A stretch of DNA of 64,000 nt from Phallusia mammillata (lineage: Eukaryota), in the NCBI GenBank assembly GCA_965637545.1, contig OZ281496.1:22692001-22756000 (forward strand), given 5' to 3'. The translations under genes were made by a program, and so were the position numbers. Positions 6,834 to 17,089 of this stretch are shown piece after piece (within the stretch, counting starts at the first letter, position 1; every line of letters begins with the position of its first letter). The notes under the pieces are model-generated. The model did not search any database, was not told where the DNA came from, and saw nothing but the letters and a program-made list of their open reading frames with translations.

Positions 6834-9564
6834 TCACAGGAATTGGCTTGGGTTGGCTTTGGGGTCTTTTTGGTTTCTGAAGCGCACAGCCAGCCATACA
6901 CCCAGCATCTGAAACATTATTACATTTAGAGACCTGCTAAGTTATAACAAAAAAACTGTAACTTTTTAAGCATACTATTTAGGTGACCAGTATAAAATAC
7001 CTCAAATCATATCTAAAATACTATTTCTATTATATATATATATATGAAAAAAATATATAAAATACCCCAGTCAACCTTGTTAACAATGAGGTTAAATCAC
7101 AAAAACTTACCTCAGTAAAACTAAAGAAGAGTCCAACACCACCACTTGCTTCCAGTGCATGGCTAATTTGGTATGGAATGACTTCACTACAGGTTCTGCA
7201 TGTCAGTTGGCTATCAGTAGTAACAGTATCTGATACTGTAGGAGTAGGAGATTGGCATTCTTTGCGCTGAAAAAAGGAGATGCTTTATTGCACATCTTGT
7301 TATGGCAACGGAAAAAATGAAACGAATTTTGAGGAAATTGTATCTACAACCTTGCTTATTAATTTTGCAATGTCATATTCATTACAGCATCTAACCCAAA
7401 AGCAGACCAAAAGACCAATATCCATTGCCACAGTAGAGGCCAAGTTACACTTGCAGATCAATTCATGGTAACATTTAGTGATGGGACGGGTATACGGTAC
7501 TCGGTATCGATGGTATCGAACGATTTCAGTGGTATCGATACTCGTACTCGGTATCGAAATTTTTTGTCTCAGTTTTCGATACCAACGTGCGAGTACCGAA
7601 GGTCCATTTACACCATAATAATACGGGCAACTTTATGCCAACATTTGCTTCGGACAGCATAAAATTGGAAAAAAGTTCCGCCAGGTTACGTATATTTTTT
7701 TCACTATCGTATGGAGATTACATTTTTCTGCATGTGTGTGTGCACGCCTGTACCCTGGCCGTGACAGATAAATTAGTCAGTGATATACAACACTGTACTT
7801 AAGTACTCAGTAATCGTACTCGGCATCGAAGGTATATACATGTGGTACTCGTACTCGGTACTCGCTTCAAAACCTGGTATCGTACCATCACTAGTAACAT
7901 TATCACTTCATCAAACATACCATAGAATGCCATTACCCCAAAATACCATCTACCAAGTAACAAAAGAACAAGTAGAACAGTAAAGTTGTTTTTTGTGATC
8001 ACCTGTTGACATTCTGTGCTGTTGTTCGTTTCCCAACCACAGCATGTAAAGTACTTTTCAGCATCCTTGATAGTGTTGTTCTTTAGCCCGTCAGTTGAAT
8101 CACTAGTCCATACTTTTTCAATTGCATTTTCCTATTTAAAACAGTAAACAGTTTAAAATAGATGAAAATGTTATTTGTAAAAGAGTGAAGACAAAAACAT
8201 TTTAATATTTTCACAGTAAAATTGTTACCAATTTTGAGTTTAAACAAAGAGTTACTACTTACCACTTGTTTTTCTGACACAGCTAAACATGCAATTGACA
8301 CTGAGAACTGAATGATGAACAAAAGGAAGAGTACCACAATGTACTAATAGTTTAGCAATTAAGGAAAACTTTTTTGTAACAAGTTGTACAGTTACGGTAA
8401 TTCATGTCTTGTAACAGTTTACACTGGGACATGCATATGTGGCTCTTCTGGCATTAAACTATAGGTTAGGCAGAGCATAATGCAAATAATCTTTTTGTCC
8501 ATGATAGACCAAATTAAATATAACAGTGAAGGATACGAAAAATAGCAGAACTTGATGATGCTTGAAACCAGCAAACAGCCCAAGAAAAGAAATCAGAAAC
8601 AGGAATAATCCAGAAGCAATAATACCTATGAAAAATATTTGCAACTAATTAAATAAATAAGTTCTAATTTTGTTTGTTATGTGATACTTTCATGGAACAA
8701 ACCACTGTTGTTATGGAATCATTTTAACATTTGAATGGATGATACAATGTGGTTAAATTTGTATGTAACAACTGTGCCTATCAGCAGTTTCTACATTCAA
8801 ATCTGTTTGGCTTTGGGAATATTTAAATTTAAAAAATCTTCTAGCTGAAAAAGTAATACAAGGTATGCATTTTTCGAACCAAAAATCTGTCAGAAAAACA
8901 AATATGTAACAATACATTTTTTATGATTTGTTTGTATACGAGGTATAAGCAAATCCGCTTTGACCGGACTAGTCACTCAATTACAGGACCAGCCTGGAGA
9001 ATTTGCAAGTTCATGATGAGATATTGGCTATCAGTTCAGTTTTAGTCAGAGTCTAGTTTTTTTTTTGGGGGGGGGGGGGCTAATGCTGTTTATCTGTGAT
9101 ATAACGATTCAGCTTTAAGCACTTGTATGTTGTTAAAGTCTGGTACACAACACAGAACCTAACCCCACTTGTGTAATGGAGATGCTGGCCATCGTCTAAA
9201 AAGATTTGTTTGTGTACAAATTATTAAAGGTTTACTTACAAACTTACTTTAGGGCACAATTCATGTTATATAAACAGTATTATAATTTACCTCCTGCAAT
9301 TTCAAATGAGCTTATGATTGATGTTGCTCTTGCATATGACCCCATTCCAATGAGAACAAACGATACAAGCTGTAAGAAAATAATACTTTTTTCATTCTTT
9401 TATAAAACAGATTAATTAAATATTATTAATCCAACTTTTTAAAAATCTTGGTTTAATTATTTCTCATATGATTGTTTATCATAAAAAAAACATAGCAAGC
9501 TTACCAAAAATAGAATGTTCAGTAACGCCAAGGAATTCTTGGAACAATTAAATCCGCCACACAT
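6834..9564 (-). CDS. TSPAN13: Tetraspanin 13/31-like, 7 coding exons, 222 aa
   Basis: Exons 9564-9505, 9369-9291, 8625-8537, 8343-8263, 8131-8003, 7266-7111, 6908-6834 are in frame. N-terminus [25 protein letters not shown] motif and C-terminus [35 protein letters not shown] are typical of TSPAN13/31. The symbol denotes the 13/31 pro-orthologue. Confidence 0.95.
7476..7893. mobile_element. hAT MITE family B, copy 1 (418 bp) in TSPAN intron 5
   Basis: TIRs TAGTGATGGGAC / GTACCATCACTA with subterminal GGTACTCG/GGTATCG repeats. Perfect TSD GTAACATT at 7468-7475 and 7894-7901. An inverted second copy lies at 52081-52502. Confidence 0.9.
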
Positions 9565-11424
9565 TTTGTTTTTAGGGTAAGACTAAGTTCCAGACAACAA
9601 CACTATTTAGGCAAATCTTTAAAAAATTACAACATCAATCACTTGAAACAGGGCCAGGGGTGACCGCAATCTCCTTCAGGATTAAAGTTTTCAAATGTCC
9701 TGCTCCTGCCTGACCAGAACTACAAAACGTCAATACACGTACACTTTGTGAGGTCATAATTCCCATGCAAGCACGTGACTCAACAGTTGACTCGTGAAGC
9801 GTGACGATATCTTACAAAGACAGTCATGGACTGGTAATTATTCGGTGGGGTGTTTCTCGATTTTATATCCTTAAAAACTGAATTCAAGTAAGCTCTACCC
9901 ACATTAAACCAAAAAATTGGAACAATTAATTTGAACGCCAGCCCAAAATACTTTTTCCGCGTCTGGTTGCATGGTAAAATGTTTCACAAATTGCTCATAT
10001 GACTACTTATATAAGTTTGATACACTCCTGATTTTCTTGGCGACCTAAATAATTGCAAACACCAGATAAAACATTGGTTCCCACTTTGATAACTACTTGT
10101 ACCACGTTAATAACATGCTTGAGTTTTCTTAGTTTCATCTAATGATCTACTTTTTTACTATTATGAAAAGCCTGTAGGCAGAAGCCGACTGCCAATGTCT
10201 AATTGTTTTGCACGAATAGCCTCAAGCAATTGGCCTTTCTTCCTTACTACTAAATATTAACGTTTAATCTAAAACGCGGTCCTTGCATTAACCAACATTT
10301 GAAACGCCTTTTTGTAGACAAAGAAAATGTCACGTAGACTAGAGACCACAACGATCTCGGAATCACCCTTGAAAACAACTTTTTCCTAATGGCAAATTTA
10401 AAACTGACGACTGTCACTATGAACACCATTTTCAATGTATTCGAAATCTAGACGTTTTTGCAATGCAACTGAACCACCCTCACATTGCTGCAGTATGTGT
10501 AGCAAGATCTGTTTAAAAAGTAACGATTTTCTGTTACTTGAAAACTGCACAATAACACGACAATGTTGGGAATAAAATTTAATCATGGCGTAGCAAAAAA
10601 GGGAAAGAAAATGTAGTCACAATTCATAACATTCACATGACCTGAACAGTTCTTACAGACATAAAGCAAACATGTGTTGTACATTCTTTTGCAGGCTTGG
10701 GTATAAAATATTTGAGCAAAATTCTTGGCACCTTAGGTAGGATAAAAGCCGCTATCTGCATTCACAGTCAAACAAAACATAACTAAGTCCAGAGGCCAAT
10801 GCATTAATTGCAGGTGTATCCTAGCTCCTATGTAAGAGCTTGTCGTACAGTAGGTCCTATACGAACGTTGATCATCCTATGTAGGTAGATTGGATTGACT
10901 ATCATCCTAGTTCCTATGATTGAAGCTGGGTAGCAGACGGCCTACTCTTTCTATAGTTGAATGAGGCCCTAGTGCCTATGTATAGGATGACACTGGCACC
11001 TATGGTTTGCTATGTCTTCTCGGCCCTACCCTACCTGCAAATACAAGGATTACACAATCAGGTACAAAACAAATCAGTTTAATGAGGTGCAGACAGTTTG
11101 TGTCCATAATTTTTCCTCCACTAAGTCAAGCAGCTAATTTGCATGTCCATTACTCATTTGAGTAGTTGCAAGCTGCAACATTTAGCCCAGTGCTTGGAAA
11201 TGACACACACAAACAAAACACAGTGGTGGATTCCATGCACTTATGCAATACTTACCATGTGTAGCCCATACTTACATGTTTCTGCCATTCATTGATTGAA
11301 GCGATAGGGCATGAACTCCTCAGTTTGAACCAATAGGGCATGAACAACAGATGTACACAGACACAAGACAGAAACATCAGACCTACTATAACTTTACTTA
11401 CCTTTGTACCAAGAAATGCTCGGT

Positions 11425-13668
<2,244 letters not shown>

Positions 13669-14300
13669 TTTGCTGATTGTAAACGCTTCTCGTCAGAAGG
13701 CAGAACAAAGATGGCGCTTTACAAAGAGTAAAAACCAGAAGACTCGTGGGGCGACAATGCACACACTGGTTCGTGTGAGATTTGAATTTTCAAGCGGATG
13801 ACTTGTGGAATTTTAATGCTTCATGTTCAACTTTCTAATGCAGGATAATTCTTGTTCACGTTATGCACATTAAGTGACTTTATTGTAAGACGTAATATAA
13901 GCATCAAACGGAAGAGAAACGATTGTTTATTTAATTCATCCCCGAAGTATTAAAATGTTATCTTTTAGATTCATCTTTTCATTATGTTTTGTGCTAACGG
14001 CAAAAAAGCTTGCTTTTTGTACCACCTTTATTGTAAACTTTATTGTGTGGAGAATTTCCGTTGCATGATGAGAACATGTGTTGTGCTGGATTCCGAATCA
14101 GTCCGATTTTAAGGCAAGCATGTAACGTCCCGGATGTAAAATCGGCGCGAAATGTACACATTCGCTTGTTATTTTCTTTAAAGAGGTCAAAGGTTAGTGC
14201 GGTTCGAGCCATTCGGATGTCCTAAAAAAAATTTGGAAAGGGATAAACGACATTTAAACTTACATTTCAATGAAAACTTGCGGCTGCTGTAGAAGTGTTG
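13669..14300. promoter_or_regulatory. Inferred bidirectional promoter region between hnRNP A/B (-) and CBX (+)
   Basis: Divergent gene starts, a locally CpG-retaining stretch, and a YY1-type motif AAGATGGCG at 13708-13716. The TSSs are not observable. Confidence 0.55.
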
Positions 14301-14829
14301 TTTTTTTTGCAACCGCTTGTGTTCGTATAGTTTCACATAGCACATGTTGCTGGAAGATGGAATTCATATAACCCTTCTGCAGTGTTTTGCTAAAGCACCA
14401 TTATAATAATGCTGCTGGACATTAAGCAATATTAAAAAAATGATAATGTATTTACGGCATTTGTTGCAGTTTTGATATGAGCACAGCAGTTAGCAAAAGC
14501 CATTACGTTGTGAAATACGTTATCCACAGTTTTTAGCCAATATTATGCAGTTTGGTCACTTGGTGTGTTTTGCTTTAAATGCTCTTATGTTTGGTTGTAT
14601 TTATAATGTTGTTGTTTTTATAATGATTTTTCAGATCTATGTTTTTAGCTTCCTGGTTTAGATCTCTAATCGATTTTAGTTTGGTAAGTATACTTTAATT
14701 CTTTTGAAATATTATGACATAGATACAAATAGTATTAAAAAATTTCACAGAAGATTTAGTTGTTGTAACCAAAAGGTACTAATGATGTATCTTGTGTCTC
14801 ATTCAAAACATTTCATGTTGTAGAATACC

Positions 14830-17089
<2,260 letters not shown>

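Follow-up and report, generated by a model that had tools for sequence, protein, structure and literature searches.

The hnRNP A-type gene of the ascidian Phallusia mammillata ends in a 3'UTR intron that is alternatively processed, being spliced in some transcripts and retained in others, and the noncoding exon that follows this intron opens directly into a dense array of UAGG motifs, with a motif cluster occupying the same place in a distantly related ascidian. We think it probable that selection has maintained the array as a platform for hnRNP A-type binding, tied to the processing of the 3'UTR intron, and we lean, less firmly, toward the fuller reading that hnRNP A bound to this conserved platform beside the acceptor decides between splicing and retention of the intron, with feedback. 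The gene probably regulates itself through a switch that is related to those already known from mammals. The window is the whole 64-kb stretch of DNA that was analyzed, positions are counted within it, and a slash within a splice-site motif marks the exon border.

The gene lies on the minus strand at 10560..13803 and comprises 11 ORF exons followed by a terminal 3'UTR exon; the 11 exons, from 13803 to 11402, were delimited by splice joints in RNA contigs, and every border is AG/GT. The spliced ORF encodes a protein of 358 amino acids whose N-terminal part has two RRMs and whose C-terminal tail, Gly-rich and of low complexity, includes an NYGPMK...GPYGG motif, which by eye and unscored we take to be M9-like. 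Pfam RRM_1 has two matches in this protein, and RRM1, in which the RNP motifs LFVGGL and KGFGFVTF are kept, has its best match in the UP1 portion of human hnRNP A1 (E 9e-33). An entry described as "hnRNP A1 [Phallusia mammillata]" (P0036) is 99% identical to the protein encoded in the window. Judged from its sequence, the gene belongs to the hnRNP A group (A1/A2B1/A3), so that the preliminary description of this DNA, which had recognized an hnRNP A-type gene in an invertebrate chordate, is borne out. A CBX/HP1 gene with Chromo and Chromo_shadow domains is divergent to the hnRNP A gene and runs along the plus strand from 14633; the head-to-head arrangement of an hnRNP A-type gene with a CBX gene is also found in vertebrates. 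The ascidian spliced leader (ATTCTATTTGAATA) is present on contig loose ends at 14633 and 9619, and none was found at the 5' ends of the transcript contigs L019-L026 and L028 from relatives. Elsewhere in the genome there is an intronless paralogue that is 100% identical to a Phallusia mammillata UniRef protein and that adjoins RNase HII in both Phallusia and Clavelina; it has no 3'UTR intron, and its 3'UTR contains no TAGG.

The last coding exon (11402..11555, minus strand) contains the stop codon TAA at 11427-11425 and continues for 23 nt of 3'UTR up to the donor of a 367-nt intron (11035..11401, minus strand). Three GTAAGT motifs lie past the stop on this strand, namely donor 1 (AAG/GTAAGT, 11396..11401), which is used and forms a junction 23 nt past the stop, and two further 5' splice site motifs inside the intron, motif 2 (CAT/GTAAGT, 11270..11275) and motif 3 (ATG/GTAAGT, 11250..11255), at 149 and 169 nt past the stop, from which no joint was seen in the contigs. 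Two extra GTAAGT in a Phallusia intron of ~360 nt have a probability of ~0.014 at the window's own rate. The acceptor (TTGTATTTGCAG, 11035..11046, with its AG at 11036-11035) has two CTGAT branch-point-like sites upstream, and it opens the terminal 3'UTR exon (10560..11034, minus strand), which is ~475 nt long as judged from contig 3' ends at 10646, 10590, 10566 and 10445 together with an ATTAAA at 10583-10578, an end that is approximate because contigs cannot reveal the poly(A) site. The preliminary description had these features right, from the stop codon and the positions of the three GTAAGT motifs (first letters at 11401, 11275 and 11255) to the sequence of the single acceptor opening the UAGG exon, and the junction at this acceptor is now seen in RNA contigs.

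The RNA evidence consists of contigs assembled from four runs of four studies and covers positions 9000-14900; such contigs drop rare forms and cannot quantify isoform ratios. The junction from 11402 to 11034 is spliced in run X1, where the joint is placed at 11031 and 11399 and a shift of the cut by +3 gives 11034/11402, and in run X9 a contig ends at 11036 and its loose letters resume at 11404 and beyond, a second instance of the spliced form. The same intron is retained in contiguous contigs of X4 (10566-11428), X17 (10445-11374) and X1 (11007-11428). In these same four runs the ten coding introns are removed and uncovered, so the retention is specific to the 3'UTR intron and does not stem from DNA contamination. 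The last intron of the gene lies just past the stop and is seen both spliced and retained, as in the HNRNPA1 type of regulation, and its junction, 23 nt after the stop, is also that of a small intron placed less than 50 nt from the stop, as in the HNRNPA2B1 type. When runs were searched with the intron alone, 85-100% of intron words were recovered in 12 transcriptome-like runs of three studies whereas six runs from two further studies gave 0%, among them X9, in which the junction itself is seen. This contrast could reflect library type (total versus poly(A)/3'-end) rather than regulation, since contigs do not quantify. The retained form is abundant in several runs, an observation that sits uneasily with rapid decay.

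Several other candidate features of the transcripts were considered and set aside. A recursive splice site was suggested by the junction AG/GUAGGG, which regenerates a 5' splice site-like sequence, yet the contigs contain no second joint downstream. A joint from 10955 to 11984 in X9 was taken as an artifact, as it has noncanonical GT..CT ends, a 4-nt overlap and low depth, and loose ends at 11471 and 11988 are probably assembly chimeras that arose via the Gly-rich repeats; the 30-mer beyond the loose end at 11471 does not occur in the genome.

The UAGG array occupies 10815..11034 on the minus strand, in an exon that opens GTAGGGTAGGG, and it contains 12 TAGG within these 220 nt, the first of them starting at exon base 2. 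The mean across the 64-kb window is 0.55 TAGG per 220 nt on either strand and base composition predicts 0.8, so the preliminary description was correct in placing the count far above expectation. In 2000 dinucleotide shuffles the mean was 2.6 and the maximum 7. Elsewhere in the window, 220-nt stretches of the plus strand hold at most four TAGG, and all the minus-strand stretches with at least five are at the hnRNP A 3'UTR locus; around other RRM loci, covered over +/-1.5 kb, the maximum is four per 220 nt. Within the array are three bipartite CATAGG-NNC-TAGG units (CATAGGNNCTAGG), as had been noted before, and the 240-Mb genome contains this pattern at 12 places in all, 3 of them inside the array. 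Two TAGGNNNTAGG units spaced 45-75 nt apart occur 91 times in the genome, and the array locus is the sole case outside telomere-like (TTTAGGG)n/(TTAGGG)n arrays or one simple repeat.

What is common to the sites of the array, and to those of different species, is the UAGG core alone, and the flanks differ. A shared core with variable flanks fits an RRM protein that reads UAG(G) rather than a microRNA seed, and a microRNA target array is unlikely, given that nothing beyond this core is held in common either within or between species. Other UAG-binding proteins, such as Musashi, DAZAP1 and hnRNP D-like proteins, are possible alternative readers of such an array. A repeat or mobile element is ruled out, since the 240-Mb genome contains a single copy of this 3'UTR, in which no tandem period is found. 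Among Rfam families, two intronic SNORD31 are the only matches in 9000-14900, so none falls in the array, and the predicted RNA fold of the array stretch is not significantly stable (z -1.57). The coding sequences of nine relatives contain 2 UAGG where synonymous shuffles predict 8.2 (P 0.012), which gives a hint of depletion, the nine rows not being independent of one another.

To reach the loci of relatives we searched with the stop-free ORF of the Phallusia intronless paralogue. The orthologue in Clavelina lepadiformis (L017), which belongs to a different ascidian order, contains introns and is syntenic in having CBX upstream on the opposite strand. Past its stop there are 22 nt and then a donor, TTG/GTAAGA, followed within the intron by two more GTAAGT at +138 and +231 nt (P ~0.018), by the acceptor TTATTTACAG and by an exon, GTAGGGTAAAAGGATAGGCGTAGG, that opens GTAGGG. 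Since Clavelina likewise has two extra GTAAGT, the inner sites are probably not accidental. The Clavelina exon has 8 TAGG in 150 nt, more than any other cluster within the 20.8-kb locus (the runner-up has 5), with a Poisson expectation of ~1e-5 for such a cluster anywhere in that locus. Alignment of the Phallusia and Clavelina 3'UTRs gave nothing meaningful, and as these 3'UTRs are unalignable, what has been kept is motif content and position and not sequence. The occurrence of the motif cluster, itself far beyond chance, in the same place in a distant ascidian argues for a function and for a protein that reads UAGG.

Contigs of five further relatives (P0026, P0021, P0011, P0024 and P0015) group in a tree with tunicate proteins against those of vertebrates. 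The P0026 relative has both an unspliced mRNA (TAG, 21 nt, then GTAAGG...) and a spliced mRNA, and in the spliced form the downstream exon has TAGG at +59, 101, 125, 155 and 167, that is 5 in ~110 nt, an array weaker than that of Phallusia; its retained intron of 760 nt contains no extra GTRAGT. TAGG occurs at +19, 36, 66 and 71 in P0021, and P0011 has CAG/GTAGGG followed by two more TAGG inside 25 nt, and in two further relatives UAG/G straddles the junction itself. No array was found in the P0024 and P0015 relatives. When 4-mers are ranked over the 200 nt that open the terminal exon, TAGG comes first or second in Phallusia, Clavelina and the P0026 species, and in a pool with Phallusia left out, CTAG (24) and TAGG (19) are on top.

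For vertebrates the comparison covers one loach HNRNPA1a locus and published papers. In the loach the donor is 8 nt past the stop and the intron is ~415 nt long, and its last exon contains no array; in human HNRNPA1 and HNRNPA2B1 the stop is likewise in the penultimate exon (PMC8068773, PMC3091714). A 3'UTR intron position in common with vertebrates means that the intron is old, and a post-stop intron that predates the tunicate-vertebrate split is the favored reading. Where the earlier description offered "ancient or convergent" for the loop as a whole, the loach and human genes favor "ancient" over "convergent" for the position of the intron, and the dense UAGG array itself is seen, among the loci compared, in ascidians and in relatives that group with tunicates only.

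The mechanism that we would propose begins with the array as a multi-site platform for the gene's own hnRNP A protein and probably also for the protein of the intronless paralogue. When hnRNP A is abundant it would coat the array and hinder use of the adjacent acceptor, and the 3'UTR intron would then stay in, so that the mature 3'UTR would still contain three 5' splice-site motifs of consensus sequence. Retention should then reduce the amount of productive mRNA, either through detention in the nucleus and decay or through rare use of the inner donors, and when hnRNP A is low the outcome would be the spliced, NMD-immune mRNA. Here we infer the binding of hnRNP A to the array, the direction of its effect and the unproductive nature of the retained form. 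In SELEX the winner for hnRNP A1 is UAGGGA/U, and the best binder carries this motif twice with 2 nt between the copies (Burd and Dreyfuss 1994, as cited in PMC9634572). UAGG within an exon silences splicing in a manner that depends on hnRNP A1 (Han et al. 2005, PMC1079783), and human cells keep in the nucleus and degrade mature mRNAs whose 5' splice-site motifs are intact (PMC9074902). In Phallusia, as with the hnRNP A1-dependent silencers, UAGG and UAGGG are present in the exon that adjoins the regulated splice site.

The preliminary description had proposed a different output, with three competing donors, in which hnRNP A bound to the array moves donor choice from 11401 to 11275 or 11255 and the resulting junctions, 149 and 169 nt past the stop, trigger EJC-dependent NMD as in HNRNPA2B1. 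In its favor are the three perfect GTAAGT of Phallusia and the two extra GTAAGT of Clavelina, whose number in each intron is improbable at the rates given above, and there is a precedent in the autoregulation of HNRNPA2B1, where a small NMD-immune intron is joined by 3'UTR splicing events whose junctions are NMD-sensitive (PMC3091714). In the contigs of the four runs, donor 11401 is indeed used and its joint, from 11402, reaches 11034, but neither 11276 nor 11256 takes part in a joint, and there is no other second 3'UTR joint that would lie more than 50-55 nt past the stop, though rare forms can be missed there, and the alternative to splicing that does appear is retention of the whole intron. 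The absence of inner-donor joints is no disproof, because contigs drop rare variants and NMD substrates are rare at steady state, which makes this weak evidence. Against the donor switch there is also the P0026 relative, whose long retained intron lacks the extra motifs, and the scheme leans on the 50-55 nt EJC rule, which was established for vertebrates and for which a literature search found no test in tunicates. A shift between NMD-immune and NMD-sensitive donors is thus unsupported by the contigs, and we regard it as quite unlikely to be the main output of the array.

It is also conceivable that the array acts in the cytoplasm, as a 3'UTR element for stability, translation or localization read by hnRNP A or by another protein, and that the retention of the intron is unrelated leaky splicing. 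Both isoforms carry the array, so it could act after splicing, and there is a published proposal that hnRNP A1/A2, when bound to 3'UTR motifs, recruits CCR4-NOT and that A1 and A2 regulate each other by way of the 3'UTR (PMC8068773). This explanation does not lead one to expect that the array would be tied in position to the splice sites, yet it abuts the acceptor, as the exons of Phallusia, Clavelina and a third relative open with GTAGGG and the motif lies over the junction in two more, and the intronless paralogue, which lacks the intron, also lacks the motif in its 3'UTR; we hold it to be rather doubtful as a full account. A lack of any function, in which case the array would have arisen by an accident of composition or be what is left of a decayed repeat, and intron retention would be mere splicing noise, fits with 3'UTRs that cannot be aligned between Phallusia and Clavelina and with the missing arrays of P0024, P0015 and loach HNRNPA1a. 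It is very improbable, however, for an array that is unique genome-wide, in a single-copy stretch without a tandem period, whose motif cluster is found again at the corresponding place of the gene in another ascidian order and in relatives. Binding of hnRNP A to the array next to the acceptor, with an effect on the choice between splicing and retention, would accommodate these positional features and is the reading that we favor.

The autoregulation of hnRNP A1 and A2/B1 bears on splicing homeostasis, on ALS and on multisystem proteinopathy, and the ascidian locus offers a compact natural construct of ~600 nt that would combine a UAGG sensor, a switch in the form of a 3'UTR intron and possible output signals in the form of 5' splice sites. 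Its layout appears to have been kept by selection across ascidian orders while the surrounding sequence drifted, and it may reveal a cis-logic that is still undefined for the HNRNPA1 intron-10 loop. Embryos of Phallusia and Ciona readily accept injected mRNAs, morpholinos and reporters. Our search of the literature found no report of a UAGG array at the 3'UTR intron of an hnRNP A gene from a tunicate or other invertebrate, which is not proof of novelty.

Among known systems, the exonic UAGG silencers and the SELEX winner resemble the Phallusia exon in having a UAGG or UAGGG core in the exon beside a regulated site and in having close pairs of motifs. They differ in number, with twelve copies in Phallusia versus one to three in the silencers, and slightly in spacing, as the Phallusia pairs are 3 nt apart and the copies of the SELEX winner are 2 nt apart. 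Furthermore, because the Phallusia array is in a terminal noncoding exon, what results is a retained intron, where the UAGG silencers cause an exon to be skipped. The retention and decay of mRNAs with 5' splice-site motifs offers a likeness of another kind, in that the retained Phallusia form has three GTAAGT in its 3'UTR (PMC9074902, PMC11629677), though that pathway is one of quality control in human cells and fission yeast, and in Phallusia it would be serving as a regulated output.

In HNRNPA2B1 an NMD-immune small 3'UTR intron is accompanied by further 3'UTR splicing that gives rise to NMD-sensitive forms, and these increase on overexpression (McGlincy et al. 2010, PMC3091714). The Phallusia gene is like it in the small 3'UTR intron near the stop, in the potential for 3'UTR splicing beyond 50 nt and in the pairing with CBX. 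The NMD-sensitive forms of HNRNPA2B1, however, use extra 3'UTR exons and a downstream intron, with splicing being activated by the protein, whereas the extra donors of Phallusia share one acceptor and the second junction that was sought in the contigs was not seen. Human HNRNPA1 instead reduces its own mRNA by inhibiting the splicing of its last intron, which is in the 3'UTR, in a manner independent of NMD (Suzuki and Matsuoka 2017, as cited in PMC8068773 and PMC9634572). The likeness extends to the gene family, to a last intron placed after the stop, to the choice between retention and removal and to an NMD-immune junction, and the difference is that the table in PMC9634572 lists no cis-element for the human case, whereas Phallusia has a 12-site array and two extra donors. 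On this comparison the best reading is that the ascidian switch is nearer to the intron-10 autoregulation of mammalian HNRNPA1 than to the AS-NMD of HNRNPA2B1. More speculatively, and as a tentative proposal, ascidians may keep in legible form an ancestral chordate feedback module of hnRNP A, made up of a UAGG sensor and intronic U1-binding (GTAAGT) sites, through which the level of the protein would decide whether the transcript becomes a stable mRNA that is exported or one that, with 5' splice-site motifs still in it, is detained or decays, and of which the HNRNPA1 intron-10 and HNRNPA2B1 3'UTR mechanisms would be the diverged descendants.

The intronless hnRNP A paralogue, which encodes 347 amino acids in Phallusia (G000:C4:4383388-4384440 in the genome, corresponding to L003:1492-2535 in the extracted locus) and has a Clavelina lepadiformis counterpart at L015:6001-7032, clusters with a Ciona protein in the tree (support 91/84). 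It has no 3'UTR intron and no TAGG in its 3'UTR, and has the appearance of a retrogene of old tunicate origin. In Phallusia and Clavelina alike, this paralogue sits immediately upstream of an RNase HII gene.

For the intron-containing hnRNP A gene, the deposited Phallusia hnRNP A1 protein (P0036) ends in GPYGGEFYK, which matches read-in to the intron following exon 10 (window 11556-11657, minus strand), and because this C-terminus reads into the intron, a cDNA retaining that coding intron exists; its retention was not seen in the RNA contigs of the four runs. RNA contigs from three runs diverge from the gene at 11471 and 11988 and continue into 150 to 255 nt of unrelated sequence, and the 30-mer past 11471 in the diverging contigs is absent from the Phallusia genome; these departures are probably assembly chimeras formed via the Gly/Tyr-rich repeats. 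Two introns of the gene each host one SNORD31 box C/D snoRNA on the minus strand, at 12572-12638 (45.6 bits) and 11858-11926 (41.4 bits), with both matches exceeding the gathering score of 40.

The next gene downstream, on the minus strand, is covered by RNA contigs at 9197-10019 and has an intron at 9370-9504. Its spliced-leader addition site is at 9619, no more than about 900 nt past the poly(A) region of hnRNP A. The interval 9993-10560 is spanned by low-depth RNA contigs in one run, which may represent read-through.

Far from contig ends, the Phallusia genome carries extended internal arrays in which TTTAGGG, a 7-mer known as the telomere unit of the plant type, is intermixed with TTAGGG (G000:C2:13649490-13649661, C2:13697629-13697821, C4:6759317-6759614, C1:33352428-33352561, and C8:184958-185031). 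The Clavelina orthologue locus has a weaker second cluster (L017:18225-18375, plus strand; 5 TAGG in 150 nt), about 5.4 kb downstream of the hnRNP A stop and directly ahead of a Gal-3-O-sulfotransferase gene.

On its other side, the Phallusia hnRNP A gene is divergently oriented to a plus-strand CBX/HP1 gene (window 14633-16040) that contains Chromo and Chromo_shadow domains and has its spliced-leader acceptor at 14633. The Clavelina CBX gene (L017:56-3587) is likewise on the opposite strand and upstream of the hnRNP A orthologue, with a 3HCDH gene between the two. This CBX-hnRNP A neighborhood, found in both Phallusia and Clavelina, is like the CBX-HNRNPA pairs of vertebrates.
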